Shown here: piece after piece, positions 9,772 through 51,767 of the stretch
Layout: each line of letters begins with the position of its first letter
Numbering within the stretch: the first letter of the stretch is position 1
NCBI GenBank assembly: GCA_000708835.1
Contig: DF236953.1
Coordinates: 420,990-484,989 of the forward strand
DNA length: 64,000 nt
From: Klebsormidium nitens
Lineage: Eukaryota; Plantae; Klebsormidiophyceae
Reading direction: 5' to 3'
Position numbers and translations under genes: made by a program
The notes under the pieces: generated by a model
Told to the model about the DNA's origin: nothing
Databases searched by the model: none
Seen by the model: the letters and a program-made list of their open reading frames with translations, nothing else

Positions 9772-12700
9772 ATGTCGAAAAGGAAGGTGGTCGAAGGCGC
9801 CCGGCCAAACCTGGGCGTCGAGCAGGACTTTCCCCGGGGTGGTGCGGGGCCCCTTTCTTCGGTGGAGGTTCTACAGGCACGCCAGGAAGCAGAAGATGAG
9901 GTCAGGGGCGGCATCATTGTCCCAGCTGCTAAAAAGCAAAAGAAGGAGAAAGGGGCAGGCAAGAAGAAGGGATTGATTGGTGAAGAGGCGGACGGAGAAG
10001 CGGAGTTGCTTCAGGGAGGAGTCAAGGGGAAGCTGCCGAAGTTTGTGGAGCTGCTCAAGTTCAAAGTAAGTCGAGCTCCGTTTTTCAGAAAATTATTGAG
10101 GCTGTGGTGGTAATGGTGATTCTTCTCCAATCCGCTCGCAGACTTTCAATTTGCAGCTTTTGCAGCTGAAATCACTTCTTCGGTTCTTCCGATCTGCGAT
10201 GGACAAGGTGGTGGTGATGATGATGGGTTTAAGAGCTGTGCAATGCTGCCATGAGAGGTTTTTGTAGCCATAGGAAGGGCTGATCGCAGCCCACTCTGTA
10301 AAGGCATTTGTTGCTTCTTAGTATCCTGATGTGCGCTTCAGATTTTCTCTCCGTTTTGCAACTTTCAAAACTTTTTGAAGATCTCAAGTCCGTCATTCTC
10401 CTACCAAAATCTGGTGGTACAAGCTCACACTGGGACCAGAGTATCACCAAAGTTTCCAGGCAGTCAAACCAAGAGGTTTGACTGAAAAACGCCAGAAAAG
10501 GTGCCGAGAGAATGTCCCAGCAAGATGGAAACAATCTATGCTGCTGTTAGTTTTGCGCTATAGAAGTGCAAGTATCAAGATCAATTCTTGGAGACTGTTG
10601 TGTCCGCTTCTTATCAAACCCAAAGACTGGTGCAACAGGATGTGACTTTTTGCCCGACAATTCTCACTTGTTCAAACAACTTCCTTTGCAGACACTTAGT
10701 CCAGGGCTGCGCATCTGGGGCTCGGTCGCTGAGGTCAGCAACAAGGACCTCGTGATCAGCCTGCCCAATGGTCTGCGTGGTTTTGTGAACCCGACGGAGG
10801 CTTCAGATGTTCTGGCGGACATGCTCAAGTCGTCTGGAGACACCGGCGAGAAGAAGTCCAAGAAGAAGAAGAAGGGTGCTGTGCAGGACAAAGGGGAGGA
10901 GGAGGAACTAGACGAGGTACGCAATGGCCCGTTGAAGTCCAACCAGATCTTGGTCATTCTGATGAGCTAGTCTTCTCAGGGGGAACCGGTTCTTTTGTCC
11001 ACATAAGTACGAAAGTTTTGTCGTCTACTGAGAAAGATTTCTGTGGATTAGACGACTGAAACTCATCACACTTAGGAGAATCAAGGCCCATAGGTGGGTT
11101 CATCAGAGCCTGAAGGTAAACAGGAGGAGGCCCTCCCTTATGATCAAGAGGGAGAGTCGTGACCGTTCGCTCATGGACTCCTTGGACAGAAGGTAGAAAA
11201 AGGATTTTCCAGTCCCATGAAAAGGGGTTGATTAAGATTTACATAATCCACGCACTCGAAACGGCTGAATATTGAGGAGATACAACCGGAATTCGAGTCG
11301 TTTAGTCAAGCGTTCTTATCTGTAAAGCTGACTGGCTTTCTACGGGAGAAGGATGTGGATGCCCCTTATTATCTGGTGGGTTGCAAGCATTGAGTGCAAC
11401 ATATGCTAAGGCTTTAAACGGCTCAGCTTGCACCAACTTTTGGACCAACTGTTTGCAGGACAAAGACATTCCCCTGCTGACCGAGATCTTCACTGAGGGC
11501 CAGCTCGTCGGTTGCACCGTCAAAGGCCTTGGGTCTGGTTCTGGCAAGCATGGCGGAAAGGCGGACAGCAAACGAGTAGAACTTTCCCTGCGCACCTCTC
11601 TCCTCAATGAAGGCCTAACCATCGATTCGATCCATGAGGGGATGGCCCTAACCGCCTGTGTCAAGAGCGTGGAAGACCACGGGTTTGTGCTGACCTTCGG
11701 GGTTCCGGCGCTCTCGGGGTTTCTGCTGAAAAGGGACTTGAGCGAAGGGGCGGCGCTCAGGAAGGGGCAACTCATTCAGTGTGTAGCAGGTCAGTACTTT
11801 CTTAATTTTCGCCATGCAACAGCGTTCACCGAATCGTGTGAGTTGGTGGTCGATTGACCTTCTGTAGGGGCTCGTTTCTACTTCTGTCTTTGAGACATTC
11901 GCCGTACATTAAACGTTCTTTGCGTTTTGGCAGGGAAGACTGGTGATAGCAATAAGACGGGCAGAGCAAGTCGGAAGGACTGAACAAAGAGCTAGATCTC
12001 ACAACCCCGGAAGAATCTGGCCAAACACTGTGGGGATCGTGCTCATCAATCTCGCCATGAAGCCTTCACGGGCTCAGATTTTCGCATTTACACGCCTGCA
12101 TCTTCATGCTCCTACAAAACTTCGGTGGAAAAGTTCTCGGATGCACTCATTATTGACACCACCGTCTCGTGCAGGCTCTATCGACAAGCAGCGCAAGACA
12201 GTCGGCGTCAAGACGGACCCAAAACTCGTCACGGCCGCCACAGTCCAGGAGCACGACGGGCTAACCCTCGAGACCCTCCGGCCGGGCGCACTCGTGAGCG
12301 CCAAAGTGCGCGCGATCCTTCCCGACGGTCTGCTCCTCTCCTTTCTCACGTACTTCACGGGAACGGTAGACCGTTTCCACTTGGACGAAGACTTGCCGGC
12401 CGCGGACTGGGCTGGAAAGTACAGTGAGAACCAACGGCTGAAAGCGCGGGTGCTGTTTGTGGACCCGGGGACGAAGAGGGTTGGGCTGACGCTGAAGCAG
12501 GCGCTTGTGGCGGGGCGGACTCCCGAACAGGTAAATGACCTGCTGATGCAAATTCTCGTTCCGGTTGCATAACTTACGGCGCGGGCGGCTTGTGCTGGCT
12601 ACTTCTGCGCGAGATGATTCTAATCTGTGGGGTTCCGTTGCTCCTGGTTTCAACCGAAATTTTGTATCCTGAACGTCCGTTTGTGAGGAGAGAGGAAGGC

Positions 12701-15700: not shown

Positions 15701-18700
15701 CGACGCTTCTGATCTTTGATATCCGCTCGCAACAGAAAAAGAGTTTTTGCTGCAGGGCTACGTCGCTAGCTCGACGCCACGTGGCGTCTTCGTCCGCTTC
15801 CTCGGACGCCTCACGGGCATGGCGCCCGTCTCGCAGCTGTCCGACTCGTTCGTCAGCGACCCGGCGGGCCTGTTCACACAGGGTCAGTCAGTGCGCGCGA
15901 GGGTGGTGGAAATGAACGAAAACGTGGGCCGGTTCACGCTAACCACAAAGCAGTCGCTGTGCTTTTCGCCGGACGCGACGTACTTGGAGAGCTACTTTGC
16001 ATCTGAGCAGAAGGTGCGGACGCACTTCTTCGATCACACGTTTAATTTTCGACTTGGGATTTGTGTACTATAACTCTTTCTTTTCTACTTCATTTTCGTG
16101 GACGTGGTGTGTCGACCGAGATTTCGTAGGGATTCTTTGGTAGGGAGTGGGTACTGCCGTGGGTTCTCGTGGAGATCAACCGTTAGTGAACATTTAGCGT
16201 GCCGAGAAGTCGTTACGGTTTAGAAAGCAAACGAGTTTGTTTTGGGAGATGCGAGGCTATCTGCCTCTCTGTATAGAGTCAATCTGAAAACCGCTTTTCA
16301 AGGTTCGAACTTTAGCTCATGTGGAGCGCATTTCCTTCCGGTCTCTCACGCACGTTGTGGATTCGTGGAATGGTTCTAAGGGTTTGAACCCTCACCTCTT
16401 TTCTTTGGTCTTGGCTGTCAGTTCAGCAGCACTGTTTTTGGATGTCACTAACAAGGTATCAACACTTTGCTTGATGGGAGGCGGTACAACAAACTCAAGA
16501 AGATCTTTTATAGTTTCGGGAAAAAAGGTCCTTCAATAAGTCGTATAAGGAACTTTGGCCCCGACCGCTCTTCCCCTCTTGCACGTTGGACGAACTGAAC
16601 CCCCTTTTGCTGCAGATTGCCAAGCTCCGGAGTGAGCAGGAGGGCACCTCGCTCGACTGGCTGTCGGCGTACCCGATCGGAGCGGTCGTAAGCGGATCGA
16701 TCCAGGAGAAGAAGGATTACGGCTACATCGTCAGCCTGCCGGAGCACGAGGACATTGTGGGCTTCATCACCTACCACCAAGGTGAGAACGGACTCTGAAA
16801 AGATTGCAAAGCTTTTTTCTTAAATCTTCAGATTTTATCTCTTTCCGCACTTCTTGTAGAATCTGCTACTGGGCCTCGTTGCGATTCATCCAGAGAGGTT
16901 TTGCGCTGGCGTTTCCGGATTGTTCCACAAAAAGTCGGTATGCGTTCTCGTAACCAGGACCCCTACGCATCCTGCGATTTGTCAAAAGGGTTCGCTGCGA
17001 GTTCACAAGATGATTGGTATTGCCAGTGGCAACGGCCAAAAGGCAGGACGTGCATTCCGTTGTCTGAAGTATGGTGCAGAACTGTTACCAATCTTTGGCT
17101 GCTCGGCGCCAAACGAGGTTTGGTCCAAATCTCATTCTTCGCACCTCAGCCGCTAATTCATACGATCTAACGAGCTTAGGTCTCCGACTCCGTCAACTGT
17201 TGGTTTGTAGGATCTTTCAGATGGCCTTGCAGATTGTTCCCCACGTACAAGGTCCGGGCTGTTCAAATTCAATGAGACTTCCAAGTTTGTCCTCCCGATC
17301 TCCTGATTCTTCCAGCGTTTTTGACCATGGCTTGTGTTCTATCTCTCCAGCGGGCGGCGAACTAGAGGTGGGCGCGGACGTCCACGCGCGCGTCTTGGAC
17401 GTGGGCGTCGCGGACGGCATCGTAGACCTATCGGTGCGGCAAGAGGTCTTGGGTGAGGAAGCCACGGGTAAAAAGAAGAAGAAGGCCAAGGTAAGGGGAG
17501 CACGAGACCTGGAAAGTTGTGTGTTTGGGACTTTGTTGAGCATTTGGGAGTGGGTTTGAGGACTTCTGCACTTTGATTAAGATCGACCCAATGCTTGGTA
17601 AAGGTTTGGGACCGTTGGAATGGCTTGCTGTCGATTTCTTCCAGCCATCCCAAGCAACTTGCCGAGGTTTTTTTTTATCCGCATCCTGCACGCCTGCAAA
17701 CCCTGCGAACATATTGGCCCCCAGGGATCACCGTACCCGGTGCTTTCAAAGAACCTTGACAAACCCCAAAACTTTGGCTGACTTGCAAACGGCTGCGAAC
17801 CCCGTGTAAACCTCCTGCGAACCGAACCCAAATCTCAAGCGCCGTGAGACACGGACGCCTAGAGTCTTGGCCGCCCAAGTCATGACCTTGAAGCCATCTG
17901 TCTGAAGCAACCCCGCACTTCTGTGAATAGCTTCAGAAGTCATTGAAGCCGCTACAGTTTCGTTGAGTGTATTTTGACCGGTAAACATGTGGCCCAGGGC
18001 CCTCATTTGCTAAGTCTTGAAAGTACAACCTGTATGGACCTCTGTGAATCTGCTAAGCCGATTGGAAAACCACGGGATTCTCGAAGTTTTTTAGAGCGGC
18101 CTTTGGTTCTCCTGCCGTTGGTCAGGTACGGTGTCAAGTTCTTTGAGCTTGAGGAGCTACTGAAATCTTGCAGCACCTTAACACGCTTTCCGTGTTGCTC
18201 CAGAAGCCCGCCGCCCCTCCGCTCCCCGACCTGAATCAGAAGGTCGAGGCGGTGGTGCAGCTCGTGAAGGACGACTACCTGGTGTTCACTCTGCCCCAGT
18301 CGGGCAACGCGGTCGCTTATGCAGCGACCAAGGACTACAACTGGCAAGCCGTGGACCCGCACAAGGCGTTCAAGCCCGGCCAAAAGTGAGCGCTTAGAGA
18401 CGTGCCTTTTGAGTCGAAGTTCGCTGTGATTCTTGGTGCCGCCTTCTTCTTGACTCCTTCTCCTTGAATGGAAGGCATTAGGCAGGGTTCGATGTAGGGC
18501 CATAAGACCCAAGTTGTCTAATTTATGTTGCCCCGTGCATTCGAATACTACGAGCTTCTGGAATAAGTGTCCTCATGGACGGAACACGTGCATCCTTGTG
18601 CAAGACCTTCCAAATGCTCGCTGACGTCACATAGCGCTTGGCCGACGTCATTCACGCTGCCACGGGCTGATGGGGTCCGTCCAGCGACTGCCGGGGACCC

Positions 18701-21700
18701 CTCACGACCGCCTCCAGTCGCTGGTACCCTTCTAATTTCTACCCGACTTTGCTGACGTCACATATACCCTCGACTGACGTCACTTACTCTGCCACAGGCT
18801 GCTGGGGTCCGTCCAACGGCTGCCAGAGACCCCCCACGACCGCCTCCTGTTGCTGCTGCCCTTCGGAACGGACTCTCTGTACGCGTCCAAGTCTGGGGAC
18901 GGTTCGGCGAAGAAGGGGACCAAGCCGCCGCGGATCGAGGTCGGGACTGTCGTGACGGGGAGGGTGACGTCAGTGAAGGCACTGCAGCTGAACGTGGAAC
19001 TAGACCGGGGGCTCATGGGCAGGGTGCACATTACGGAGGTAAGCCATCTGAATGTCAACTTTCCGGGTACTTGATCCATCCCAGTTTCGTCCTTCTCATT
19101 CTGCTTCTTCATGGAAGTGGGATGTTGTTCGAAGGACAGTGGGTCTGCATCCAAAAGCACGCAGTGTCAGAAATTGTTTCTGGGCGTCCAAACAAAGTAC
19201 GTTGCAGCCCAAGGAACTCCGATGATGGACGGGGAGCCTGCTCAGGGAGGCGGACACCTAGACCTTAAATGCGCGACACAGAAACTTCAATCATGACTAT
19301 CTACAAGCTTTGAAGAGATCGACCCTTGTCGAAACGTTTGTCGGACACGTCATTAAAACTCCTTGATTAGTACAACCCGTCGAAGCGTCTTAGACCACTG
19401 TTAGCGCGTGGCAACCTGACCACTTTTTTAGGGTCTTCGGGTTGTAGGAATCTAGGTTTCTTTTGAGACGTTGTGGTTAGATGCCCTTTGTCACGAGGAA
19501 TTGGCCTTGCAAATACTTGGGAGATGGGGCTAACGAGTAAGGGGCATGTTGCAGTTGTGAGCGGTGGAGGGTTCGAGCAACTTCTTAACAATGTCCTGAT
19601 TTACTGCCCGCTCATCAAGTGGACATTCTTGTCATAGCATTCGCACTCGTTTGTGGGGAGTACCGGAGACCAAGTTCTTCTTGTCGCAGCTTCATTCGAA
19701 TAGCCATCTGAAAGTTTCATTGATTCCGGATTTTCAAACCCCTTTGTTGATTATTGCGGACTCCTTCAGTAGCTTGTGTGTTCGACGACTACTTGACATC
19801 CAATCTGCGGTTCTGCAGGTAACTGACGACTACCCTGGCGACGGTGTCAACCCACTCATGGCCTTCAAGCCCAAGCAGGAGATCAGCGCCCGCGTCGTTG
19901 GTTACGGCCAGACCCCCGCCGCCGACGCTCGGCGCTCTTTCTTGGAGCTCTCCCTCCGACCTTCGGAGCTCCAAAACCCCAAATGGGATGAGATTCGGAC
20001 CGCGATTGCGGATGGTAGCACGCCGGACGCCCACGTCACGGACGCCCGTCTGGCGCCTTTGACCGTGGATTCGGTGGAAGTGGGGAAAGAGATCGTGGGT
20101 TATGTGGAGGAGATTGGCGCGCATACCGCGAGTCTCGGGCTCTCGACGCAGGTGCGCGGGCGCTTGCACGTAGTCGAGAGCGCGTCGGAGCCGTCCGAGA
20201 TGCGGAGATTCAAGCAGGGATTTAAGCTGGGCGACCCGGTACAGTGTCGGGTCGTTGCTGCGGACGCCAAAACGCACGCCGTGGAGCTTAGCTGCAAGAG
20301 CGGGAAGAAACTAGAGGTGGGAGATATTGTCGCCGGGCGGGTGAGCAAGGTACTGCCCGGTATAAAGGGCCTGCTCGTCCAGGTGGGCATTCACACCGTG
20401 GGACACGTGGCAGTCACGGAGCTGGGCGACCGGTGGCGGGAGCGGCCCCTAGAGGGCTTCGCGACGGGGCAGTTTGTGCGGTGCGCGGTGCTCGACGTGA
20501 CGGAGAACGCGAGCGGTAACGGTAATGGGGCCGGAAGCGGTCATGCGATCGAGCTTTCACTGAGGGAGAAGCTTGGAGGGTGCGGGGGAGAGGAGGCGAA
20601 GGCGGTTCGTGGAGAGAAAGCGGGAGAGGGCGTGGAAGTCCCGAGAGTCGCGGCTGTGGAGGACTTGTCTCCTGGTCAGGAAGTCTGGGTAAGGACGTGA
20701 ATCTTTCGGCAAGCCCATTTTTTCATCGAAAGCAACGGGCGTTTGCTTGCCTTGCTCTAGGCCGATGATTGGATAAACTAGTGGCGGATGAACTTTTCTT
20801 GGAGGATGTATGAATCTCGAAGACATGTAGAACCTTAGTACGGGGTCTGCTTTGCTACCAATGGTTTGCAGAATGCTGGGTCGCCGTGCCGACGAAGATA
20901 TCACTGCGCTCCCTTTCCCTCCTGCACTATCCCTTTCTTTCTCTTCCTACCCTTTCGTACGGCTTGTACAACCTGAGTTTACACATAGATATCGTTTGTA
21001 TGTAGGGAAGGAGATGTGTCCTTTATCAGTGCTGACGTCCACTTCTTTGCTCAACTCCTCACGCAGGGCTACGTCAAGAGCTGTTCCCCCAAGGGCTGCT
21101 TCGTTATGTTGGGCCCCAAAATCGACGCCCGCATCCTGATGGCCAACCTCTCGACCACCTTCATCGACGACCCCGCCAAGGAGTTTCCCCCGGGTACCCT
21201 GGTCCATGGCTGGTACGTACCTTGTTCTCTCATTACCGCTCTTACTTGGGTGTGGTTGCAGTGCTCCACCGAGCCTCTTCGCGTTTGCGTTACCCGCACA
21301 CTTCAATCACTGGAAGCACCGAGGTATCTGGACGTCGCGTCTTCATTCAAGGTTCTGGGGCATAAGTACCCCTCTCGGCTTCTTGAGCATGCTGGTAGTG
21401 TATCGTGGTCCTCCAACAAACAGACTAGAGTCGTATCTTACGATCTGAAACTGACTATAGCTCATTTTTTTTGGTCAACTTATAAAGGTTTTAGAGTCGC
21501 GTCGAGCTAAATAACGGGTTCCCGCTTTTGGAACGACCGGATGCCAACTATCTGCGTCCGCCTATTCCCTGGTCGTCGCAGCTGAATGCATCCGCAGAGT
21601 GAACGAGGTGTCTAAAAGCCCTTGGGTTGTTTCTCCACATCCAAGTGTTACGTACCATCACGACATCCCTAAGTCTGTCGAAAATCAGGCTTCTGTTGCA

Positions 21701-40862: not shown

Positions 40863-40866
40863 CGCG
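40863..40866. repeat. Left target-site duplication CGCG (right copy 51326-51329)
   Basis: tatatg-CGCG-[TGTC...GACA]-CGCG-gccgca. Confidence 0.8.
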
Positions 40867-40958
40867 TGTCGCGATCCTACCTGAGGATCTCTCTCTAAAC
40901 CCAGCTGCGCCAGGCACCATGAAGCATGTCAACGCTATACACCTAACTCTCCTACTCT
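40867..40958 (-). repeat. Repeat A, outer copy (92 bp)
   Basis: Identical to 41317-41408. Confidence 0.95.
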
Positions 40959-41314
40959 GAATGATTGCATCAATCACAAATCACCTAAACCACATGCACC
41001 ATACACATAAGCGCAGTCTGCTTATGCGGAGACTCTCTGCTGGCCGTCATGCAGCATGACGAGGAGACAATGGTTGCTGATCAAAGTCGCCTTCAATATG
41101 CCTTAGACCGAACATAGAGAGAATGAGCTACAATCAGCTCATTCTCTTACCTAAATGTTCTGTCCGGCCATCAACCTTCTGCTTAAGTGCTTTGTACGGT
41201 AATCATCATGCTCATCAATGCATTACCGGACTCACTCTAGCTCTAGTTACGGCTGACCCTAACGTAATGACCGGGTTGCGAGATAACCCGGTCGCGACAC
41301 AATCTGGCGTGACA
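40958..41314 (-). repeat. Repeat B, 3' copy (357 bp, LTR-like, TG...CA)
   Basis: Matches 50969-51325 except for two adjacent substitutions (ca versus tt). Confidence 0.95.
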
Positions 41315-41320
41315 GCTGTC
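41311..41320. other. Perfect palindrome GACAGCTGTC joining the B end and A start (internal end-to-end junction)
   Basis: Right-terminus sequence (...GTGACA) + GC + left-terminus sequence (TGTCGCG...). Confidence 0.9.
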
Positions 41321-41408
41321 GCGATCCTACCTGAGGATCTCTCTCTAAACCCAGCTGCGCCAGGCACCATGAAGCATGTCAACGCTATACACCTAACTCT
41401 CCTACTCT
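41317..41408 (-). repeat. Repeat A, inner copy (92 bp)
   Basis: Identical to 40867-40958. Confidence 0.95.
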
Positions 41409-41416
41409 CCCCTCCT
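41409..41416 (-). other. Putative polypurine tract (sense AGGAGGGG, purine run continuing into A)
   Basis: Lies 32 nt after the pol stop and directly abuts the inner repeat A. Confidence 0.65.
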
Positions 41417-41448
41417 GAACCGTGCACCCCCATCTTTCTAAACACGGT

Positions 41449-44400
41449 TCACTCCGTCATTCCGACCGGACCCACTAACGCCTGCGCCGTTTGACACTTG
41501 GGGCAGAACCAGTCGCCCTCAGGAACCGCCGCCAGCGGAGGGACCAGGCACCTCGTGTGCCACCCGGCCCCACACCCATCACACAGCAACATGGAGGCTT
41601 CGTCATCAGCCCTGCGACAGCGCGTGCACGCAAAGTCGGCTGCGGGGCGCGCCAGGCGCGCATCCTGTCGATCGTCGATGTCGATCCGATGACACGGGGC
41701 ACATCTCTCCATGTGCACCCGCACCGTCCGCGCGTCCGCCCCCTCCAGTTCCAACACACCCCCCGTCCTCACGTGCTTGACCCGCAGGATCCGTGGTCCC
41801 GCCCGGCTGTCCAGGGTGTTGAGCATCTCTCTCTGCAAATACACGTAATCGCCCACCGCATACCTGATGATTTGCGGCTTCCAGGCACCACTGCGGGTCT
41901 TGGCGTACCGCAGCGTGTCCCGGTGTTGGGCAATTTGCAGGTTGCCCATGGCCATTGGGACCAACCGCCGGAACAGTGCAGCCCGTTCTGCCACCAACGC
42001 GCGCAGCCTGTCCGGACGGTCAATGTCCAGGGGTTCCTCCAGCGCCGCGCGCACCGTCCCTGGCAAAACCGGCTCCCGTCCGAAGAGCAGCACGTACGGG
42101 GAGAACCCACCCAGTGACGCCTGCGCGCTGAACCGGTATCCCATGGTGACCCAAGGCAGGTAGACGTCCCATTGCTCCGCGGCGTGCCCAAGGCACCACT
42201 TCCGCAGCGCACCTTTGACCACCCCGACTATCCGCTCGCTGAGGCCATTTGCCTGAGGGTGGTGGGACGAGGTCGACCGGTGGTCGATGTGAGACCGGTC
42301 GAGTAGCTCCTGGAAAGCGCCCCCAAACTCCCCTCCTCTGTCCGTCACTATCTCCGCACAAGCTCCGAACACCGTAAGGACTTCCCGGGTGAATGCCTCG
42401 GCCACCGTCTGCGCTTCTTTGTCAGCCGTGGGCACGAACACCACGTGCTTGCTGAAATGCTCAACCATGACGAGCACAAACTGGTTTCCCCGGCTTGACT
42501 TGGGCAGCGGCCCCGCAGAATCTAGCCCCCACCGGTAGAACAGTCCCTTAATCGGGAGGGGCTGCAACACAGGATGCACTGCGTTGAAGGCTGCCCTCAC
42601 CCGATCGCACGCCTCACACTGACGCACCACCCGCTGAACGTCCGCCGCCAGACCCACCCACCAGTAGTGAGGGCTTAGCAGGGACACCGTCTTCTTGACC
42701 CCGAAGTGTCCGCATTTCTCATGCACATCCCGAACTAGGGCCTCTCTCTCTGCCGGCCTTGGGACCACGCGCACCCCACCGGCTGCCTCACGGTGCACCA
42801 GGTGGTCCCGTTTCCACTCAAAGCTGCGCGCTCGGTGCTGTGCCCGATCTCGCTCCCCCGAGGAGCTCCTCTCTGGCGCGCGCCCCGTCTGCAACAGGGC
42901 CAGGACTGCGCCGTCCGCCCACACGTCCACCGCCGGCCGCACAACCACCCGTCCGGTTTTGCTTTCCCCAGGCGAGGCTGCCGGGGCCCAAGCTAGCGCT
43001 GCTGCAGCTGACCAGCAGGGCGCCAGTGTCTCCCCCAAGTCCCCCTCCTGCCGGACGCCCGCCGTGTCTTCGTCTGATTTCTGTGGGTACCGACTCAAGC
43101 AGTCCATTTCGTTCTCGTCCCCGGGGGTGTAATCGACCACCATGTCAAACTCGCTCAGCATCATCGCCCACCGCGCAAGCTTACCGGTCAGCTTGTTGTT
43201 GGTCAGGATCCACTTGAGCGGCCGGTGGTCACTCTCCAAAGTGAACCGCTCCCCGTACAAGTAGTTCCTCCACAGCCGCACGAAGTAGACCGCCGCGAGT
43301 AACTCCCCCTCGAAACTGCTGTACCGCGACTCCGCCGGGTTGCAGCTGCGGCTCCCGTAAGCAATCACCCGGTCCACCCCCTGCTCGTCGGCCTGCAACA
43401 GGACTCCGCCCACCCCCTTCTTGCTCCAGTCGCAGCGCACCTTGAAGCTCCGTCCTCTCACCGGCAGCGCCAACACAGGCTCGTTCTGCAGCGCCTTTTT
43501 GAGCGCCAGGAACGCCCCCTCCTGCTCTTCACCCCAGCGCCACTGCACTTCCTTCTTTGTCAACTCGTTGAGCGGCCCCTGCACCCGGCTGCACTCCGGA
43601 ATGAACCTCCGGTAGTAGTTGACCACCCCGTTGAACGCCTTGACCGACGTAACGTCTGTGGGCCGTGGCAGGGCCTCAATAGCCGCCACTTTGGCGACCA
43701 CTGGCGACACCTTGCCCGGGCGCAGCCACATGCCGAGGTACTCAACCGAGTCGGCCCCGAAACAGCACTTGTCGGGGTGGCACTTGAGCCCTGCCTCCTT
43801 CAGCCGGTCCAACACCCGCTGCACCAGCGCCATGTGCTCCTCCAGCGTCTCCCCTCCAGCCACCAAAACGTCGTCGATGAAGCTCCGCGCGAACCCCTCC
43901 AATCCCCTCAGCGTTCTGTCGATTGCCCGCTGAAACCACGCGCTGGCGTTGCGCGCCCCGAACGGACACCGCTTCCAGCAGTACAGCTTGGTGGACCCCC
44001 AGAACGCCAGCTTGCGCCTGTCCTCTTTTCTCACCACCAGCTGGTGAAACGCCCCCCTGATATCAATCGTGGAGTAGTACTTTGCGTGCCCCAGCGCCTC
44101 CAGGACCTCCTCCGGCAGTGGCATTGGGTAGCGATCCTGCGCTGTCTCCGCATTGACCCTGCGCAGGTCCGTGCAAAAGCGGTCTAGCTTCCAATTCCCC
44201 TCCGGGTCCTTCTTCGCCGCTAGCACTGAGTTTGCCGCGAAGTCACTGTCCGTTTCCTCAATGATCCCCGCCTCCTCCAACTCTCTGCAGCGCTCATCTA
44301 TCAACTCCCACTCCTTCACGCTGTGCTTTCTGCGCCGTTCGAAAATGGGCCGCTCCGTCTTTAACGTCAACTCCACCTCAAACAACTTAAACTCTCCGAT

Positions 44401-46179
44401 CTCCCCCAAGCTATTGGCAAACACATCACGATTTGCCTCCGCCACTGACGCCGCAAACCCCTGCTCCTCGGGCGTCAGCTGACTCCCGACCAACCACCGC
44501 CGGCACTTCCCGGCTACGGGCCCCCCCGGTTCTTCCACTTTTCCTGACCGGCCCTGCCCTGCCGGCTGTCCGACCCCATCCTGCCCCGGCCGGATCTGTC
44601 CTGCCGCACCGGCCGCCTTTGCGCCGTCTCCTGCCCTGGGCGCGCGCGCTGGCGCGCACCCCGGTGCCTCGGCTGCCCCCACACCGTCTCCTGCCCTGGG
44701 CACACCGTCTTCTGCCCTGGGCGCGCGCGCTGGCGCGCGCCCGACTGCTCCGGCTGCCCTGGGCGCGCGCGCTGGCGCGCACCCCGCTGCCCCGGCTGCC
44801 TTCTGCGCCTCCCCTCCCTGGCTGCCGTTGTCCGTAGGGCCATCCGACTTCCCTCCCAACGGCAAAGCTGCCGCCGCTGGTGACGCACCCGCCGCCGCTG
44901 CGCAGGCAGCCAGGAGCCACATGACCGTGTTAAGGTCCATGGCTTGGCCCAGCAGCTCGCGTCGGGTGGATTCGGACAGACCAGGCGCCGCCGAGAATCC
45001 GCGGGGAAACCCCATGGCTAGTTCGCGTTCGTCGGCTGTGGGCTCCCCGTAGGTTAGCTCGCTTCCTTGTGTGACCTGAATCACTCCGCCCCTTGTGTGC
45101 GAAAACGCATGTGAACCGTTGTAGCTCACGAAAGTGGGCAGCGCGCGCCTTGGCTCCCCCGGCACTTCCACTTTGGCCCACGGGGCTTGTCCGGAGCCCC
45201 TAGGAATCTGCGCGCGCCGCCCGGGCCCAAGGATGTGGTGCACGAACAGCCCAGGTGGGCGGACCTGAGCGGCGATCGCCGCACGCAGAAGAGCAGGTGC
45301 ACTGAGGTTGGTCCACCACGCCCGTAGGCGGTGCGCCCGCGATCCCAACTGGGCGGCGTCCAACACCACTTCGGGCCCCAACAGACTGCGTACCTCAGCA
45401 AAATGATCCCTCACCCGAGGACGTCGGTCGTGTCCAGCCGCCACGTGCTCGACGACGTAGGCCAACGGGTGCCCCCACTTTCGGTGTGACCTCTGCAGGT
45501 GATGCAGCACCCGTACCAGGTCTTCAACCAGCCCCGACCTCTCGTCTTCCAGACCCCGCCCGAGCCCCGCTGCGCTGTTTCCTTGACACGGCCACCCTGC
45601 CACGACCACGTCGAGCGGGCCGAGTGCCAGCAGGTGGTCCTCGCTGACCAGCTGTATGTCCTGGGGCAGGCGGTGATGCAGCTGCGAACACGCCCGCTCC
45701 TCCATCCTGCCCGGAAACTCCAGGCTGAGCTGCGCGCACGACCACCGGTGCAACTCTCGCGCCGCCCCCCGCTTCTCGCAGGCCATTACCTCACCAATGT
45801 TGTATCCGAGCCGCACCAACGCCTGGGTCGCTGTTCCCACGCCTGCAAACAGCTCCAGCACCCGCAAGGGCCGGTCTCGTGGCAACGGCTGGACAACCGA
45901 CCAGTCCAACGGCTGCAGCCCCTTGAGCCGGCTTAACTGGACCTTGCGTGGCGGCTCAACAGCTGGCCGGCCCGCCGCCAACGCGGCTCGAACCGCTCGC
46001 TCCGCCCCTGTCTTAACGTTTAGCGGGGGACCCCGCGGCCACCTACTCACTGTGCCCTGCCGCGCCCCTTGTCCACTTCCCCTTTGTTCCCTGTTACTCC
46101 CGCCAGACCGACCCTCCCAGCCGGCCTCTTGTTGCACCGGGCGTGGGCCAACCGCCGTCTCCCCGCCCGGCGCCTGGCG
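41449..46179 (-). CDS. Pol: DNMT3-like C5 methyltransferase, RT, RNase H, integrase, PHD finger
   Basis: DNMT motifs at about 44900-45870. RT: RFCTDLRRVN, STIDIRGAFHQ, CPFGARNASAWFQR, FIDD (43870-43881). RNase H: DWSKKGVGGVL, EGELLAA, SDHRPL. Integrase: HHCC, then D (WGLDS), D (TDRGGEF) and E (ANGLSER), with 34 residues between the second D and E. PHD at 41494-41628. The frame opens directly after the TGA at 46180-46182; first GTG at 46137. Confidence 0.95.
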   Translation of the reverse strand, partial: RQAPGGETAVGPRPVQQEAGWEGRSGGSNREQRGSGQGARQGTVSRWPRGPPLNVKTGAERAVRAALAAGRPAVEPPRKVQLSRLKGLQPLDWSVVQPLPRDRPLRVLELFAGVGTATQALVRLGYNIGEVMACEKRGAARELHRWSCAQLSLEFPGRMEERACSQLHHRLPQDIQLVSEDHLLALGPLDVVVAGWPCQGNSAAGLGRGLEDERSGLVEDLVRVLHHLQRSHRKWGHPLAYVVEHVAAGHDRRPRVRDHFAEVRSLLGPEVVLDAAQLGSRAHRLRAWWTNLSAPALLRAAIAAQVRPPGLFVHHILGPGRRAQIPRGSGQAPWAKVEVPGEPRRALPTFVSYNGSHAFSHTRGGVIQVTQGSELTYGEPTADERELAMGFPRGFSAAPGLSESTRRELLGQAMDLNTVMWLLAACAAAAGASPAAAALPLGGKSDGPTDNGSQGGEAQKAAGAAGCAPARAPRAAGAVGRAPARAPRAEDGVPRAGDGVGAAEAPGCAPARAPRAGDGAKAAGAAGQIRPGQDGVGQPAGQGRSGKVEEPGGPVAGKCRRWLVGSQLTPEEQGFAASVAEANRDVFANSLGEIGEFKLFEVELTLKTERPIFERRRKHSVKEWELIDERCRELEEAGIIEETDSDFAANSVLAAKKDPEGNWKLDRFCTDLRRVNAETAQDRYPMPLPEEVLEALGHAKYYSTIDIRGAFHQLVVRKEDRRKLAFWGSTKLYCWKRCPFGARNASAWFQRAIDRTLRGLEGFARSFIDDVLVAGGETLEEHMALVQRVLDRLKEAGLKCHPDKCCFGADSVEYLGMWLRPGKVSPVVAKVAAIEALPRPTDVTSVKAFNGVVNYYRRFIPECSRVQGPLNELTKKEVQWRWGEEQEGAFLALKKALQNEPVLALPVRGRSFKVRCDWSKKGVGGVLLQADEQGVDRVIAYGSRSCNPAESRYSSFEGELLAAVYFVRLWRNYLYGERFTLESDHRPLKWILTNNKLTGKLARWAMMLSEFDMVVDYTPGDENEMDCLSRYPQKSDEDTAGVRQEGDLGETLAPCWSAAAALAWAPAASPGESKTGRVVVRPAVDVWADGAVLALLQTGRAPERSSSGERDRAQHRARSFEWKRDHLVHREAAGGVRVVPRPAEREALVRDVHEKCGHFGVKKTVSLLSPHYWWVGLAADVQRVVRQCEACDRVRAAFNAVHPVLQPLPIKGLFYRWGLDSAGPLPKSSRGNQFVLVMVEHFSKHVVFVPTADKEAQTVAEAFTREVLTVFGACAEIVTDRGGEFGGAFQELLDRSHIDHRSTSSHHPQANGLSERIVGVVKGALRKWCLGHAAEQWDVYLPWVTMGYRFSAQASLGGFSPYVLLFGREPVLPGTVRAALEEPLDIDRPDRLRALVAERAALFRRLVPMAMGNLQIAQHRDTLRYAKTRSGAWKPQIIRYAVGDYVYLQREMLNTLDSRAGPRILRVKHVRTGGVLELEGADARTVRVHMERCAPCHRIDIDDRQDARLARPAADFACTRCRRADDEASMLLCDGCGAGWHTRCLVPPLAAVPEGDWFCPKCQTAQALVGPVGMTE
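41494..41628 (-). other. PHD finger at the integrase C-terminus
   Basis: CTRCRRADDEASMLLCDGCGAGWHTRCLVPPLAAVPEGDWFCPKC (C4HC3 with conserved W). Confidence 0.92.
44900..45870 (-). other. DNMT3-like cytosine-5 methyltransferase domain within Pol
   Basis: Motif I LELFAGVG, II ACEK, IV VAGWPCQGNS, VI VVEHV, VIII AHRLRAWWTNL, IX ERELAMGFPRGFS, X RRELLGQAM. Confidence 0.9.
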
Positions 46180-49100
46180 TCAATGTAAGCCACTACAGGC
46201 CAGCGCGACACCCGCGGTACTGACGGGTGAACGGCTGGCCGTCGCGCGCGCAGGACGCGTGCCTGCCGCCTGCCGCAGGCGCATGGGTATGCTCGCTACG
46301 TGCTCCCCTTGCGCCCGCCAGTCGACCCGGTACGTGCCCCGCTCGGCCCACCGGTCGATGCTGAGGCCTATCGGGTAAGCTGCCCGCGTACCAATGAGCA
46401 GATCGTAGCCGGTCGACTCGGTGACGGCCAAGCGCTCGTACAGCGTTAGCTCCGCGGGAGTGCCGGCGTTCAGGACGATGGGCACCGGGTCTCGGGTGAG
46501 CCCCTTCCCCAAGGGCTCGATCTGCCCGAGGGCCGTTTGCACCCGGCAAGATGCCGCGGTGCTGTCCAACGGCAGCCCGAGCTGGTCCGCCAAGCGCGCT
46601 CCTGCCATCGAATAGAAACTGCCCCCGTCGATCAACACACGCAGCGGCGCCTTCAGTCCGGCCACCGTCATTACTTTGACCGCCCCATCTCGGTTGTCTA
46701 CCCAGTCCGGGGTGCCGACCCATTGGTTGCGCTCAGCGGGGGGAACCTTTGGCAGCGCCTCAGCGAAGGCCGCCAGCGCGTGGGTCTCCTCCCAGGCCTT
46801 TTCCGTCCCCCCATGCCCCGCCGCGCTCGAAGTCGTCTCACCGTCCGTGTTCAACTTCCCCTTTCCCTTACGGGACACCGTCTCCCATCCGCGCTCCTTC
46901 CTCGTCTTCGGAGCCGGCCCGTTCTGCGCGCGCAGCGCTGCCGCTGAGTCAACGCCAGCCACCCGCGCCTCCTCGGCCAGCAATTCGAGCGCCACCTGCT
47001 CATCCGAATTTTCCGGTCCCGACGGGCTTTGCTGCCGGCGCGCGCGATCTGCTCTTGCCTGGGCCATCCACGAACTTTCAGGGTCTGTGCCCGAGTCGTC
47101 CGCCGAGCTTTGCCTTGCGTTGCCCTTCCCTGTTTTCACCACCTCAGCCGTTGGTGTCTGCTCGGTCGAGCTAACACCTTCCCCTGGGTTTGCACCCGTT
47201 TCGACTGTCCCTTCAACCACGACCGCCCCGCGCTGGGTCACTCGCCCTGCGCTTCCTACCCCAATCTGTCCGGCTTGGCTCAACTGTTCTGTTCCGGGCC
47301 GGTCCGTGCCGGCTGTGGCCACCGCCCTGCGCATCACCTCCCTCGGGTCGAGCTGCGGCCGCGGCGCGCTGGCGCCACCTCCCGTCATCTCCACAACCTG
47401 CTGCAACGTCATCCCTGCGCGCTCTGCCAACCCAAGAAACGCCGCCACGTCCATGGTGACCTGCCCCACCAGGACCGTCTCCCCGACAGCCCTCAGCTGT
47501 TCCCCCGGGGAATCCGTCATCTCGGCCGGGGCCACTTCATCGACTGGCCCGTTGAAGGACGTTGCTGCACCCCTGCGCGCTCCACCTGGTGACACCACCT
47601 CCTCCGCACTCTGACGCTTCCCCTCCGGTCTGACGCCAAACCCTTGTGGCAGGCGGTGCAAGCCTTGTGCAGCCACCTCTCGGCCTTGGTCCGGGAGCTT
47701 CGCCATCCGCTCTTTAAGCGCCGCTTTGTCCCTGCGGGCCCGCAACTGCCTCAGTGCTTCAGCCGGAGCCTTCCTCTCCAGCGCTGCGGTGCCCACGGGC
47801 TGCCCCGTGGCTGGCCCGACCACCTGTCTCGGGCGCGTGCCCGCGCGCGCCTGTTTTCTGGGCCTGGACTGTGGCCCGGACAGCCGGGTCACTTTCTCCA
47901 CAGCCCCCGCGCCTGCCGCCGCGCGCGTCGCCACTGCTCCGAGCTCCAGCGGAGTGGGACACCACGCCCCACCTCCCTCTACCACCAGGGCGGCAGCCCC
48001 CAACCCGTATTCCTCCTCGTCCCAACTGGCCGCGTCATCGTCCTCCAGACTCAGCGCCGCCGCCGCTTGAGCCGCCGCCTTCCACGCCCTGAACTCCTCC
48101 ACTTCCGCCACGCTGAGCCCAACCGCTGCCAACTCCGCCCCTCTGACGCTTCCTGCCGGAACCGCGACTGCCGCCGGCGCCACATGTCGCTTTGGACACT
48201 GAAACGAGAGATGCGCCGGGTCACCGCACACGAAGCAGATCCGTTGCCGCCCTACGCCCCGGCCCGGACCCGACCTCACGGCTCCCCCGGCCGAGGACCC
48301 CCGACCTGCACCCCCGCCTCCCCTCTGCGGGCACTGGTTCCTGTAGTGTCCGATCTCACCGCAAGTGTGGCACGCACCTGACCCGGCCGACCCAGCAGCC
48401 ACCGCTGTTGCCACCGCCGCGTGTGGCGCCTCAGGGACAGCTGCGTGCGCGGCCGGAGCGCGCCCGCCCCACCTCGGCCGGGCCGCCTCCACTGTCCTGG
48501 GCGTCATCTCCCTGGCGATCCTAAGCCTGGACGCCATCTCGTTCACTCGGACGGCCGCATCGTACGCGTTGTCCAGCGTGTAGCCACCGTCCCCGCTCGT
48601 GGCCGCCGCCAGCGCCTGCGTGTTGACCGCGTCCCCAAGCCTCTTGTCCAGGGCCGCCACGAACTTGGTGACGAGCTCAGGGTCGGTCAGTGGCTTCTTA
48701 AGGTCAGTCGCCAACCCCTGCAACCTGAACAGCAGCTCCGGCAACTCTTCCCCTGCCTCTCGCCGAAAGTTGACCCACTCCTGCGCCTTCCCTTCGTTTC
48801 TCTCACCAAAGTGGCGCTTGAGGCTCGTCAGCAGGTGCTTCACCGGCTCGTCCTTGGTGTTGCACTCCTTGTAGGTGCGCAAGTGCGCCTCTTTTGCCGG
48901 GTTGTCCATATGCTCCCCCAGGTGTATGCAGAACCGCTTTTTAAACTCAGCCCCCTCAACCGGCCTGCCCAAGTCCTTTTGCAGCTTCGTGAACCGGTCA
49001 AGGATGCTGCCCTCGACCTGGAGTTCGAACTGCTCTAGCGTGAGCCCCTCGTTCTTCCTCCCCGAGAAACGTTGCTTCCCCTCACCAACCGCCGCCATCT

Positions 49101-49296
49101 CTGCCCAATCTTCTTCCTCCCACCAGAACACTGCCTGACCCGCCGCCGCTGGCCTGTTCACAACAACCCCACTGCTCGCGCCTGACGCGGTGTCCTCGCT
49201 CCCCTCACCCGCCGCAACCCGGCTGTACTCAGTTGCAGCTGACACCTCAAAGATGGAGCCGTGGATTGTGTGCTGCGCACGCGTCCCCACTGGCAT
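46180..49296 (-). CDS. Gag-protease polyprotein
   Basis: Gag-like helical region, two CCHC knuckles (CHTCGEIGHYRNQC 48331-48372; CFVCGDPAHLSFQC 48196-48237), aspartic protease LRVLIDGGS (D at 46627-46629) and YDLLIGT. The true start could instead be MAAV at about 49098. Confidence 0.9.
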   Translation of the reverse strand: MPVGTRAQHTIHGSIFEVSAATEYSRVAAGEGSEDTASGASSGVVVNRPAAAGQAVFWWEEEDWAEMAAVGEGKQRFSGRKNEGLTLEQFELQVEGSILDRFTKLQKDLGRPVEGAEFKKRFCIHLGEHMDNPAKEAHLRTYKECNTKDEPVKHLLTSLKRHFGERNEGKAQEWVNFRREAGEELPELLFRLQGLATDLKKPLTDPELVTKFVAALDKRLGDAVNTQALAAATSGDGGYTLDNAYDAAVRVNEMASRLRIAREMTPRTVEAARPRWGGRAPAAHAAVPEAPHAAVATAVAAGSAGSGACHTCGEIGHYRNQCPQRGGGGAGRGSSAGGAVRSGPGRGVGRQRICFVCGDPAHLSFQCPKRHVAPAAVAVPAGSVRGAELAAVGLSVAEVEEFRAWKAAAQAAAALSLEDDDAASWDEEEYGLGAAALVVEGGGAWCPTPLELGAVATRAAAGAGAVEKVTRLSGPQSRPRKQARAGTRPRQVVGPATGQPVGTAALERKAPAEALRQLRARRDKAALKERMAKLPDQGREVAAQGLHRLPQGFGVRPEGKRQSAEEVVSPGGARRGAATSFNGPVDEVAPAEMTDSPGEQLRAVGETVLVGQVTMDVAAFLGLAERAGMTLQQVVEMTGGGASAPRPQLDPREVMRRAVATAGTDRPGTEQLSQAGQIGVGSAGRVTQRGAVVVEGTVETGANPGEGVSSTEQTPTAEVVKTGKGNARQSSADDSGTDPESSWMAQARADRARRQQSPSGPENSDEQVALELLAEEARVAGVDSAAALRAQNGPAPKTRKERGWETVSRKGKGKLNTDGETTSSAAGHGGTEKAWEETHALAAFAEALPKVPPAERNQWVGTPDWVDNRDGAVKVMTVAGLKAPLRVLIDGGSFYSMAGARLADQLGLPLDSTAASCRVQTALGQIEPLGKGLTRDPVPIVLNAGTPAELTLYERLAVTESTGYDLLIGTRAAYPIGLSIDRWAERGTYRVDWRAQGEHVASIPMRLRQAAGTRPARATASRSPVSTAGVALACSGLH

Positions 49297-49305
49297 TTGC
49301 AGCCT

Positions 49306-50391
49306 CTAATCCAGTTCACTCATGCCTCCTGCTGCCGGCTCTGCACCCACTCGCTCACCCGTCTGCTCCCCCGAGCGGGCCCGCCTCTCCTGCTTCTTGC
49401 GCCGGCGCTTCTCTCGCTTGGATGCTGCCCGCTGCTCCTCCGCTTCCCCTCTCACTGGCCCTGCTTCCTCCTGGCTGCCCCGCTCCGCACACCGCTGGGG
49501 CACTATCTCCACCTCCGCCACCCGCTTTGTCAGCTCCCGCCACCAAGCTGCCTTCGCCTCCTGCTCCTCCCTTTCCTTCTCTCGCCTCGCGTGCTCCACC
49601 CGCGCCGCCACCAGCGCCTCCGCCTCTCTCCAAACTGCCACCCTTGCCTGCAGCGGCTGGAAGCGCTCACAAATGGCGCAGCTAACAGGGCACCCCAACT
49701 TGACCGCGGGGAGATGTTGTGATGGGTCCGGAACCTGACCGATGCAGGCGGCTCCAGGCGCGTTACTCGCCACAAACGCCGCGTACACCTTCCCGCGCGG
49801 ATACTCCTTGTGCTGCTGCTCGAACGCGCGCCAATCCTGGATGAACTCCTGCGCCAAGCGAATTGACCTGGCTACCGCCGGATCAGCGTCCGCCTTGCGC
49901 TGCAACTCCCGCCTGAGCCGCTCCACCTCCTGCGCTTCACGCCTGCTGCCCTGCGGCGTGCTGGACTCTTGCGCAAACGCCGCGTCCTCCTGCCTGAGCT
50001 TGAGTCCCTCCCAGGCGGCTTTCCCGAGCTCCTCGGCCGCCTGCTGCTGGCGCGCCCACTCGGTGGTCCTGGTTACTTCTGCCCCCGCCGCCTCCGCCGC
50101 CTTCTTATCACAGATGACACAGCGCGTCCCACACGCACTGCGCTGCACCGGCCAGTGGTCTTCCTCCCTTGCCTCAATTCCCAGCAGAGCCGCCCCTGAC
50201 TGATTGTTAGCTACGTAGGCAGCCCAACCGCTACTTTCTTCTGAATGTACCCCCACGATCTGCTCTGTCACAAGCAGCTGCCACCCCTGGATGAACTCAT
50301 GCGCTTTCCAAAACTCACGCTCGCGCTCCTTTCCTCCTAACTCACACAGACGCCTCAAGAGCTCCTGGATGTCAGGCGCTCCTGGCGCCAT
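49306..50391 (-). CDS. Accessory ORF0 of the retrotransposon, 361 aa, unknown function, internally duplicated putative Zn-binding domain
   Basis: ATG start, two EFIQxW...AAxVAxNxxGAA...H-x7-C-x3-C-x2-C units, charged helical segments and a basic C-terminal patch. Confidence 0.7.
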   Translation of the reverse strand: MAPGAPDIQELLRRLCELGGKEREREFWKAHEFIQGWQLLVTEQIVGVHSEESSGWAAYVANNQSGAALLGIEAREEDHWPVQRSACGTRCVICDKKAAEAAGAEVTRTTEWARQQQAAEELGKAAWEGLKLRQEDAAFAQESSTPQGSRREAQEVERLRRELQRKADADPAVARSIRLAQEFIQDWRAFEQQHKEYPRGKVYAAFVASNAPGAACIGQVPDPSQHLPAVKLGCPVSCAICERFQPLQARVAVWREAEALVAARVEHARREKEREEQEAKAAWWRELTKRVAEVEIVPQRCAERGSQEEAGPVRGEAEEQRAASKREKRRRKKQERRARSGEQTGERVGAEPAAGGMSELD

Positions 50392-50956
50392 GCTCCATGC
50401 GCAACAGCTGGTGAACCGCTAAACTGATGGTGAACAGTCGCCTGCAGCGCATGGGAGACATGGCTCAGCCAACGCATTCCAGCACGCCTCCCACCCGAAA
50501 CCACGCCAGGACCTGGCCCGCTGCTTGGCACGCTACCCTTCGCCCCGCACACACACTCAACTCTACGCCCCCCACCGCCCGCAGCTGTGGGCAGACCCCT
50601 GCACCACTCACCTCAGCCCTGAACCTTTGACCACGAGCAGGCACTATGAGCGGATTCTCCTTCTACCAGGTCCACAAAACCCTGTCAATAACTACACCAG
50701 GTCTGCTCAGACCTCACCCTCGCTGACCCTAAGCAACTGAAGCTCTCAGTGCTTCGCAGCAGCCCTCAGTCAGGGCGTCAGACAATACAGTCAGCCCATG
50801 CCCCCAAGCAAGCACGCAGCCTTCACTCGGCTAACTCAGCCGCACATTCAACCCAACTCACCACTGCACATAGGCAGCCTCGCCAGCTGTCCACCGCGGT
50901 CCACTCTGGTGCGCCCCCGCCTAGATCACTGGCGGGTCCACTCTTAACACGTTGTG

Positions 50957-50968
50957 ATTCTCTCTATG
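50957..50968 (-). other. Putative self-priming primer-binding site (sense CATAGAGAGAAT)
   Basis: Directly abuts the 5' repeat B, has no tRNA-type TGG start, and is complementary to 51124-51135 inside B. Confidence 0.7.
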
Positions 50969-51325
50969 TGAATGATTGCATCAATCATTAATCACCTAAA
51001 CCACATGCACCATACACATAAGCGCAGTCTGCTTATGCGGAGACTCTCTGCTGGCCGTCATGCAGCATGACGAGGAGACAATGGTTGCTGATCAAAGTCG
51101 CCTTCAATATGCCTTAGACCGAACATAGAGAGAATGAGCTACAATCAGCTCATTCTCTTACCTAAATGTTCTGTCCGGCCATCAACCTTCTGCTTAAGTG
51201 CTTTGTACGGTAATCATCATGCTCATCAATGCATTACCGGACTCACTCTAGCTCTAGTTACGGCTGACCCTAACGTAATGACCGGGTTGCGAGATAACCC
51301 GGTCGCGACACAATCTGGCGTGACA
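50969..51325 (-). repeat. Repeat B, 5' copy (357 bp; functional 5' LTR-like segment)
   Basis: TG...CA; matches 40958-41314 at 355 of 357 positions. Confidence 0.95.
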
Positions 51326-51767
51326 CGCGGCCGCACTGGGATGTCGATCATGCGGCATGCATGTACATGAGCGGCTATTTGCACACGTGCATGTCGACAT
51401 GCATGTTAGTGTGCAACCTTCAGTGACGCTGGTTCACTACCATATACAGCAACTTTGCATCAAGCATTGAGTTCTTCGAATCGCACCAACTTTTGACAAT
51501 TATAAATATGTCCCAATTGGTGCCGATTCAGCTGAAGTGCATGCATCGTTCAAACATCTGAAGAGCCGGACTTGCATCCTTGGGCCGTGCCAGCTGCTCG
51601 TCACATTCTTGTTAGAAACTAGGTCAAGTACACTCCTAAAAGAATCAACGGGCAGGCCTCAGCATTAAGAGATCAACCCTGCGCAACGTCCCACTCTCGA
51701 ATTCCGGCGGGGGCTTGCGCTTTCCTGCAGGCCTCGACAAATGCTAGTCGTCTACATGCATTAGAGC

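Follow-up and report, generated by a model that had tools for sequence, protein, structure and literature searches.

How a retrotransposon that encodes a DDE integrase can come to be bounded by split direct repeats is the question raised by a locus of the alga Klebsormidium nitens, found in a window of 64,000 nucleotides (nt) of contig DF236953.1, the whole stretch of DNA analysed here. In textbook retrotransposons of the long terminal repeat (LTR) type, as in retroviruses, the same LTR is built at both ends and the integrase acts on the tips of the linear DNA. The window contains at positions 40867–51325, on the minus strand, a complete Ty3/gypsy element of 10,459 bp, which is a recent full-length insertion of a retrotransposon of the KnitGypsy-Dnmt3 type. 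The comparisons described below suggest that its unequal repeats are shared by many green-lineage relatives and probably reflect a cycle in which the termini of the complementary DNA (cDNA) are joined and the integrase breaks a palindrome lying inside the LTR.

Repeat layout of the element and its relatives

Read in the sense orientation, the element consists of a CGCG flank, repeat B2, a leader, three open reading frames (ORFs), the polypurine tract (PPT) AGGAGGGG, repeat A2, the dinucleotide GC, repeat B1, repeat A1, and a second CGCG flank. By repeat comparison the four repeats were placed on the minus strand: the internal copy A2 (41317–41408) and the terminal copy A1 (40867–40958) are each 92 nt long, end in GACA, and are 100% identical, while the 5′ copy B2 (50970–51325), which opens with TGTC and contains the candidate promoter, R and U5, and the 3′ copy B1 (40959–41314) are of about 357 nt and are separated by two neighbouring substitutions (about 355/357). 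The element as a whole starts with TGTC and ends with GACA, and flank comparison gives a 4-bp target-site duplication (TSD), CGCG, with its upstream copy at 51326–51329 and its downstream copy at 40863–40866, both on the minus strand. The dinucleotide GC at 41315–41316, between A2 and B1, creates the palindrome GACAGCTGTC (41311–41320, assigned to neither strand), in which the two presumed integrase end sequences stand head to head, and the B1/A1 joint at 40958/40959 is exact. No further copies of A or B were found in the 64-kb window, where the expectation from shuffled sequences is 0 matches. An earlier reading of the letters alone, referred to here as the original prediction, had described the order B, primer-binding site (PBS), ORFs, PPT, A, GC, B, A with these repeats, TG...CA ends, and a 4-bp TSD, and it proved correct in every detail that could be checked.

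For the survey of relatives, loci were fetched for the related proteins, together with 80 metagenome loci obtained via an integrase profile, and were read by self-comparison and by their junctions. The proteins nearest to the ORF3 product are annotated K. nitens proteins of 83% and 73% identity, and the B repeat of one K. nitens locus (L001) is 90% identical to that of the window; past K. nitens there is a large set of green-algal polyproteins with reverse transcriptase (RT), RNase H (RH), integrase (IN), and a PHD finger, some of which also carry a DNA methyltransferase (DNMT) domain. The original prediction had suggested that genomic copies be compared for the same layout and had named relatives with mostly ordinary symmetric LTRs as the sign of a one-off rearrangement; the arrangement B, internal region (int), PPT, A, NN, B, A was found in 34 independent loci, which agrees with the former and not with the latter. 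Among the carriers are the Klebsormidium-like contig L003, chromosome 9 of Chlamydomonas reinhardtii (L008), the prasinophyte Pseudoscourfieldia marina (L089), Pleodorina starrii (L090, 3′ end only), and many metagenome algae, including two abundant metagenome families. The length of A ranges from about 26 to 538 nt, with a possible 8 nt in L075, and all clean full-length copies start with TGTC and end with GACA. Perfect 4-bp TSDs flank ten elements (the window element, L003, L005, L008, L089, L072, L054, L035, L079, and L051), the duplicated sequences being CGCG, TTCA, CCAA, TCCG, CATG, ACAA, AAGG, ACCT, CCAT, and TACA, and in two more, old copies the TSD agrees at 3 of 4 positions. The same search recovered from Haematococcus a canonical gypsy element (L091) with symmetric 435-bp LTRs, a PPT adjoining the LTR, a TGG-type PBS, and a 5-bp TSD, which indicates that the pipeline does not manufacture the split-repeat pattern. 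No new families came from a general scan that combined palindromes with repeated 14-mers, while looser palindrome scans gave the further candidate families L017, L038, L074, L075, and L082, of which only L075 has a possible 8-nt A, as a marginal match. As read from these loci, the layout runs through an old green-lineage clade of RT-RH-IN-PHD elements, with or without DNMT, from green algae to charophytes.

The two boundaries of the A and B repeats behave differently in this clade. In a 20-locus alignment of one family all length variation falls exactly between the end of B and the start of A, while the A/GC/B boundary has no indel in 17 aligned loci, its sole changes being C>T and G>A decay within the spacer. 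GACA-NN-TGTC, typically GACA-GC-TGTC, is present at every A2/B1 boundary, is kept in all related families, and forms perfect palindromes of 16–20 nt in some of them. The B1/A1 joint is exact in L072, L023, L089, and L007 as it is in the window; at other loci it is 1–3 nt short, has a 2-nt overlap, one extra base, or extra bases derived from the PPT, or contains fillers of 18 nt or about 23 nt. In L003 the joint is filled by 317 nt duplicated from inside the element, which lie in direct orientation and show microhomology on either side (CAG and GAGAG), and in one family four copies have four different B/A joints. The A1 copy of L079 starts 137 nt upstream of the PPT normally used, which fits an alternative plus-strand start. 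Because the A1/A2 identity tracks the B1/B2 identity in every copy, both pairs appear to date from the insertion. A variable joint combined with an indel-free palindrome argues that B/A is the junction of two cDNA termini and that the termini of the insertion arise by breakage of the palindrome. The alignments support a reading in which the B/A joint would be freshly made in each cycle and the palindrome would be an inherited attachment (att) site.

Some other features were observed at these boundaries. In the old copies L009, L018, L020, L022, L045, L055, L063, L077, and L079 the GC spacer and the neighbouring C/G of the CAGCTG core have decayed to AC, AT, or GT, a pattern that would fit deamination at methylated CHG sites. 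Upstream of B1, at 19641–19760, the Chlamydomonas locus L008 carries GTGACA-NN-TGTCAC-like palindromes three times in succession; the last one lies at the A/B boundary and is perfect over 18 nt. In L007 repeat doublets are found on both sides (8590–9940 and 17146–18801; B′-A-B ... A-B-A-B′), with 98% identity of the outer B′ pair versus 91% of the inner pair; one junction there reads GACAGCTGTC and then a second TGTC, another is five bases short, and the arrangement is complex. A copy of an internal fragment near the 3′ end of L005 was considered as a systematic filler and rejected, since it sits upstream of A and off the B/A joint.

Priming signals and the proposed cycle

The start of A, which is set independently by the B1/A1 joint, coincides in six families with the 3′ edge of a G-rich or purine run. 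In the window, by junction reading, this is the PPT at 41409–41416 (minus strand), whose 3′ edge is the start of A2. On the opposite side the original prediction had a PBS after the 5′ copy of B. No PBS of the transfer RNA (tRNA) type (TGG-type) was found next to B2, and no tRNA genes were found in the 64-kb window. Instead, the site adjoining B2, ACATAGAGAGAAT (50957–50969, minus strand), is a 13-nt perfect complement of ATTCTCTCTATGT inside B (51123–51135 in B2, minus strand, and also present in B1), which makes the latter a candidate self-primer and transcript start. Among 500 control windows none reached 13-nt complementarity, the maximum being 10 nt, and the same PBS sequence is present in the K. 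nitens locus L001.

In several families the end of B adjoins a perfect complement of a site lying 128–196 nt upstream within B. This complement measures 13 nt in the window and L001 and 18 nt in Chlamydomonas; two further families have 17 and 24 nt, the principal metagenome family has 15–16 nt, and the prasinophyte has 10 nt, whereas random internal windows taken as controls gave 10 nt at most. Besides the window pair (50957–50969 with 51123–51135), such self-priming pairs were noted in L001, L007, L008, L045, L054, L079, and L089. The self-primer and PBS sequences are unrelated between families yet their pairing is kept, which amounts to covariation, and when the predicted leaders are folded, the minimum-energy structures as well as the centroid structures are closed by the self-primer/PBS stem, with both window sites paired in the fold. 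A priming arrangement of the Tf1 type, in which the transcript would prime itself, is supported by this covariation. In three chlorophyte elements (L008, L089, and L079) the sole TGTAA of B, a poly(A) signal, sits between the self-primer and the end of B, which places the 3′ end of the RNA inside B1, and A1 is predicted to lie outside the RNA. Taken together, the PPT at the start of A, the self-primer at the end of B, and the TGTAA in B predict a cDNA with A-GC-B at both ends, so that the reverse-transcription logic of the original prediction, which had deduced an LTR of this composition, is now backed by signals that recur across families.

The following cycle can be proposed from these features. 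Transcription would start in B2, as suggested by the position of the self-primer, and would end in B1, as suggested by the position of TGTAA in the relatives. The minus strand would be primed, as in Tf1, by the transcript's own 5′ end folded back on the site adjoining B2, for which the in silico covariation speaks, and the plus strand would start at the G-rich PPT adjoining A2, where the coincidence of boundaries is observed. The cDNA resulting from these steps would have A-GC-B at each end, and inside this LTR the presumed integrase end sequences ...GACA and TGTC... would lie head to head with GC between them. Its termini, the end of B and the start of A, would be joined by an error-prone process, in accordance with the observed variability of the joint, and the DD35E integrase would nick after CA on both strands of the palindrome of the PBS-proximal LTR. 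The two nicks, 2 bp apart, would leave each end as a recessed CA-OH with the canonical 2-nt 5′ overhang, and insertion of both ends with a 4-bp stagger, in line with the TSDs and ends observed, would produce B-int-A-GC-B-A. The end joining may either precede the cutting, by way of a 2-LTR circle, or follow it. Taken as a whole, this cycle of joined cDNA ends and a subsequent palindrome break is considered probable, and with it that the integrase of this clade acts on ends that are out of register with the repeat produced by reverse transcription. Cleavage of an LTR–LTR palindrome by an integrase has a precedent in prototype foamy virus (PFV), whose integrase reportedly cleaves 2-LTR junctions at their palindrome (PMC1180852) and is, together with that of Ty3, the closest solved relative of the integrase described here.

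Several points weigh against this cycle, the support for which is sequence-based throughout. A circle contains two identical palindromes, but the mirror product B-A-GC-B-int-A was found in 0 of the 18 loci with simple 5′ ends, so the break would have to be directional and an extra asymmetry is needed. About 16 loci end as int-A/flank exactly at GACA, without B-A; copies of this int-PPT-A/flank form include L002 (5290–5400), L005, L051, L010, L012, L014, L029, L033, L034, L065, L084, L085, and L086. Complete B-int-A insertions with a TSD are L005 (CCAA) and L051 (TACA), and only these two are clean, since L030 ends at A without B-A but has no TSD and L069 is truncated. Possible sources of such copies are 1-LTR circles, an integration that uses both palindromes, and a recombination of A2 with A1 at a later time. 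In addition, the terminal A of L008 (about 26–30 nt) falls short of the PPT-to-GACA distance, the self-primer match of L003 is of 8 nt only, and the families with an 8-nt A (L075 and Gypsy-7a_cRei of C. reinhardtii) might need only subterminal 3′ processing at the left end.

Four contigs of tandem or circular appearance (L006, L031, L038, and L074) have head-to-tail units of int plus one A-GC-B, with a period of 8262 nt and 2.2 copies in L006, or identical ends, for which 1-LTR circles or tandem arrays are possible. Their use as examples of extrachromosomal circles was rejected, because collapsed assembly repeats look the same.

The same product may also be reached by a linear route without a closed circle, in which the integrase nicks or cuts the left-LTR palindrome of the linear cDNA, the left LTR being the first to become double-stranded. 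After that, the RT might switch template from the end of B to the A-GC segment and run off where the nick lies, leaving ...B-A-GC as a substrate for normal 3′ processing; or else the old termini might be joined by the host once both new ends have been inserted. This explains the sole use of the PBS-proximal palindrome and the lack of mirror forms in all 18 loci; the filler of L003, in direct orientation with its CAG and GAGAG microhomologies, is typical of template switching, and the one-base additions and PPT-derived bases at the joint fit reverse-transcriptase behaviour. However, small deletions and fillers are equally compatible with end joining of a circle, and the run-off at an integrase nick is speculative. 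The linear route is held to be rather unlikely. A lower probability still belongs to inheritance of the B1/A1 joint and of A1 via an RNA transcribed through A1, by which the layout would be copied and not rebuilt in each cycle. The exact joints of the window element, L072, L023, L089, and L007 agree with it, but among close relatives the joint differs while the flanking B and A are conserved, including all 4 of the 4 copies of one family, and the TGTAA inside B, the alternative A1 start of L079, and the positions of PPT and PBS, which predict an A-GC-B cDNA, make such inheritance quite improbable.

A functional element of the DIRS/PAT/Ngaro type, with a tyrosine recombinase acting in trans or undetected, is suggested by the split direct repeats, which are of the kind described for PAT, Ngaro, and TOC (PMC4157794), just as the original prediction had stated for tyrosine-recombinase retroelements. 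Its accompanying claim that only a DDE integrase is encoded was borne out as well: a tyrosine recombinase domain was found in no frame, with sense and antisense ORFs alike giving no match to Phage_integrase (PF00589), even when hits up to E≤1 were admitted, while the integrase is intact clade-wide, its DD35E and HHCC residues being invariant in an 18-sequence alignment. Since the RT-RNase H and integrase domains are also of Ty3/gypsy type, and the TG...CA ends with 4-bp TSDs in ten elements are a signature of DDE integration, this explanation is highly improbable. That an ordinary LTR element was rearranged just once, took up a nested insertion, or was misassembled has nothing in its favour past prior expectation and is of negligible probability, as the layout with TSDs occurs in independent assemblies and taxa and has also been reported for K. 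nitens (PMC5890265); the survey of 34 loci already refutes this reading.

Returning to the cycle of joined cDNA ends, the mechanism of the original prediction, a 2-LTR circle opened at the upstream palindrome, appears substantially strengthened and is partly supported: joined ends and a palindrome break fit the joints, while the lack of mirror forms and the identical product of the linear route leave the covalent circle as a proposal. A wider claim can be put forward only tentatively, namely, that the clade integrates obligatorily via end-joined cDNA, circular or equivalent, opened at an att palindrome internal to the LTR, much as in bacterial insertion sequence (IS) elements whose ends are abutted. 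Split direct repeats would in that case point to joined cDNA and not to tyrosine recombinases, and the clade could resemble the starting point of DIRS, PAT, and Ngaro elements via a swap of integrase for recombinase.

Coding content and genomic surroundings

The three ORFs lie on the minus strand of the window. By ORF and Pfam scan, ORF1 (49306–50391; 361 aa) has no Pfam domain and shares its frame with ORF2, with one stop codon between them. Domain matches in ORF2 (46180–49296; 1038 aa) are a gag-like CCHC zinc knuckle (~48325–48375) and an aspartic protease (~46516–46668), while ORF3 (41449–46137; 1562 aa) contains, by domain matches and alignment, a DNMT3-like domain (~45268–45888), RT (~43726–44208), RNase H (~43147–43536), an integrase (H2C2 and rve) with its DD35E core (~42256–42756), and a C-terminal PHD finger (~41494–41628). 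The DNMT domain matches PF00145, and its nearest solved structures are DNMT3A/B. ORF1–ORF3 form a single reading frame with two in-frame stops (46180–46182 and 49306–49308), which are either inactivating mutations in an otherwise young copy or sites of programmed readthrough.

The pol order of protease, RT, RNase H, and IN, the gypsy-type RT-RNase H, the H2C2 plus DD35E integrase, and the TG...CA termini with a TSD in the short (4–6 bp) range are those of Ty3/gypsy elements. Two equal LTRs are absent, the 5′ end being B only and the 3′ end A-GC-B-A with the PPT adjoining A2, and the self-priming complement stands in place of the tRNA-complementary PBS, which is usual but not universal in this group.

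The PHD finger (ORF3 residues ~1504–1548) is most like the histone-reading PHD fingers of KDM5 type; it occupies the place of the chromodomain of chromoviruses and may steer integration to particular chromatin. The linker between DNMT and RT in ORF3 (44624–44801) contains imperfect, very GC-rich tandem repeats of 42 nt and 81 nt, and tandem repeats are found at the equivalent place in L003 and L005. The GC content of the element is 64–68% (window 42001–50000) versus about 50–58% in the flanks (50–56% in the adjacent 2-kb windows), and over the same 42001–50000 interval the plus-strand GC skew is −0.19 to −0.26, the sense strand being G-rich. In the surroundings, host-type ORFs at 1125–2669 (minus strand) and 19651–20700 (plus strand), with SRA1 and RRP5-type S1 domains, look like ordinary eukaryotic genes.

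Comparison with known systems

In de Mendoza et al. study of 2018 the legend of Fig. 4c describes KnitGypsy-Dnmt3 as an element with the repeat structure of DIRS elements and with Gypsy domains (PMC5890265). A Gypsy pol with an inserted DNMT3-like domain and DIRS-like repeats are both present in the window element, which differs in nothing essential and is best filed as a member. The same study treats KnitGypsy-Dnmt3 as specific for K. nitens and gives no PBS or PPT analysis, TSDs, palindrome, or mechanism (PMC5890265). In Craig et al. study of 2022 the active C. reinhardtii element Gypsy-7a_cRei, with 86 new insertions in laboratory strains, has a left LTR without the last 8 bp of the right LTR according to the legend of Fig. 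6A (PMC9940879). It is likewise a PHD-finger Gypsy, and the 8-bp asymmetry of its LTRs matches an 8-bp A; it differs in its length of 15.4 kb and its lack of DNMT, the asymmetry is left uninterpreted in the paper, the comparison is by description, and L008 belongs to a different family. The statement of the original prediction that no description was known has to be corrected in this respect, as the repeat layout and the LTR asymmetry appear in these two publications, neither of which gives a mechanism. Literature searches turned up no description of a mechanism, of the palindrome, of self-priming, or of how widely the layout is spread in the clade, and as far as the searched literature shows, the Tf1-like self-priming proposed for the clade is new here.

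Elements such as PAT, Ngaro, TOC1, and kangaroo share the arrangement A1-int-B1-A2-B2 (PMC4157794) and are thought to use circular cDNA. They encode a tyrosine recombinase and no DDE integrase, whereas the window element has a DD35E integrase and a 4-bp TSD. The PAT, Ngaro, TOC1, and kangaroo group is not known to have TG...CA ends or target-site duplications. Tf1/sushi, Tcn1, and TAR elements have an RNA 5′ end complementary to a site 3′ of the 5′ repeat and no tRNA-type PBS (PMC6317226), as is predicted here; Tf1/sushi elements, however, have ordinary symmetric LTRs and a chromodomain where the elements described here have a permuted repeat and a PHD finger, and the likeness noted here is one of arrangement.

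If the proposed cycle is true, a clade with a DDE integrase would have kept its att sites as an internal palindrome over hundreds of millions of years of green-lineage evolution, with copies explicable only if the cDNA termini were joined. It would provide a natural case of end-joined or circular cDNA as a productive integration substrate and not a dead end, which bears on the long debate over retroviral 2-LTR circles, and it would break the tie between split direct repeats and tyrosine recombinases, a point of importance for transposable element classifiers that would miscall or truncate such elements. The question is testable, since the Chlamydomonas relative Gypsy-7a_cRei transposes actively in laboratory strains.

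The 2-LTR junctions of retroviruses (PFV, PMC1180852; human immunodeficiency virus, PMC4372172) similarly present abutted att ends as a palindrome that is cut by a DDE integrase. There, however, the palindrome arises only when the cDNA ends are joined and belongs to a side route, while here each LTR already contains it, with a spacer of 2 bp, the B/A formed by the joined ends is non-palindromic, and the route is apparently obligatory. In the copy-out-paste-in elements IS3, IS30, and IS256 a DDE enzyme acts on abutted inverted ends with a short spacer; these are DNA transposons without reverse transcription, and the junction on the circle is made by the transposase itself. Overall, what the window element shows is best regarded as a variant way for an LTR retrotransposon to replicate and integrate, common to an old green-lineage clade.

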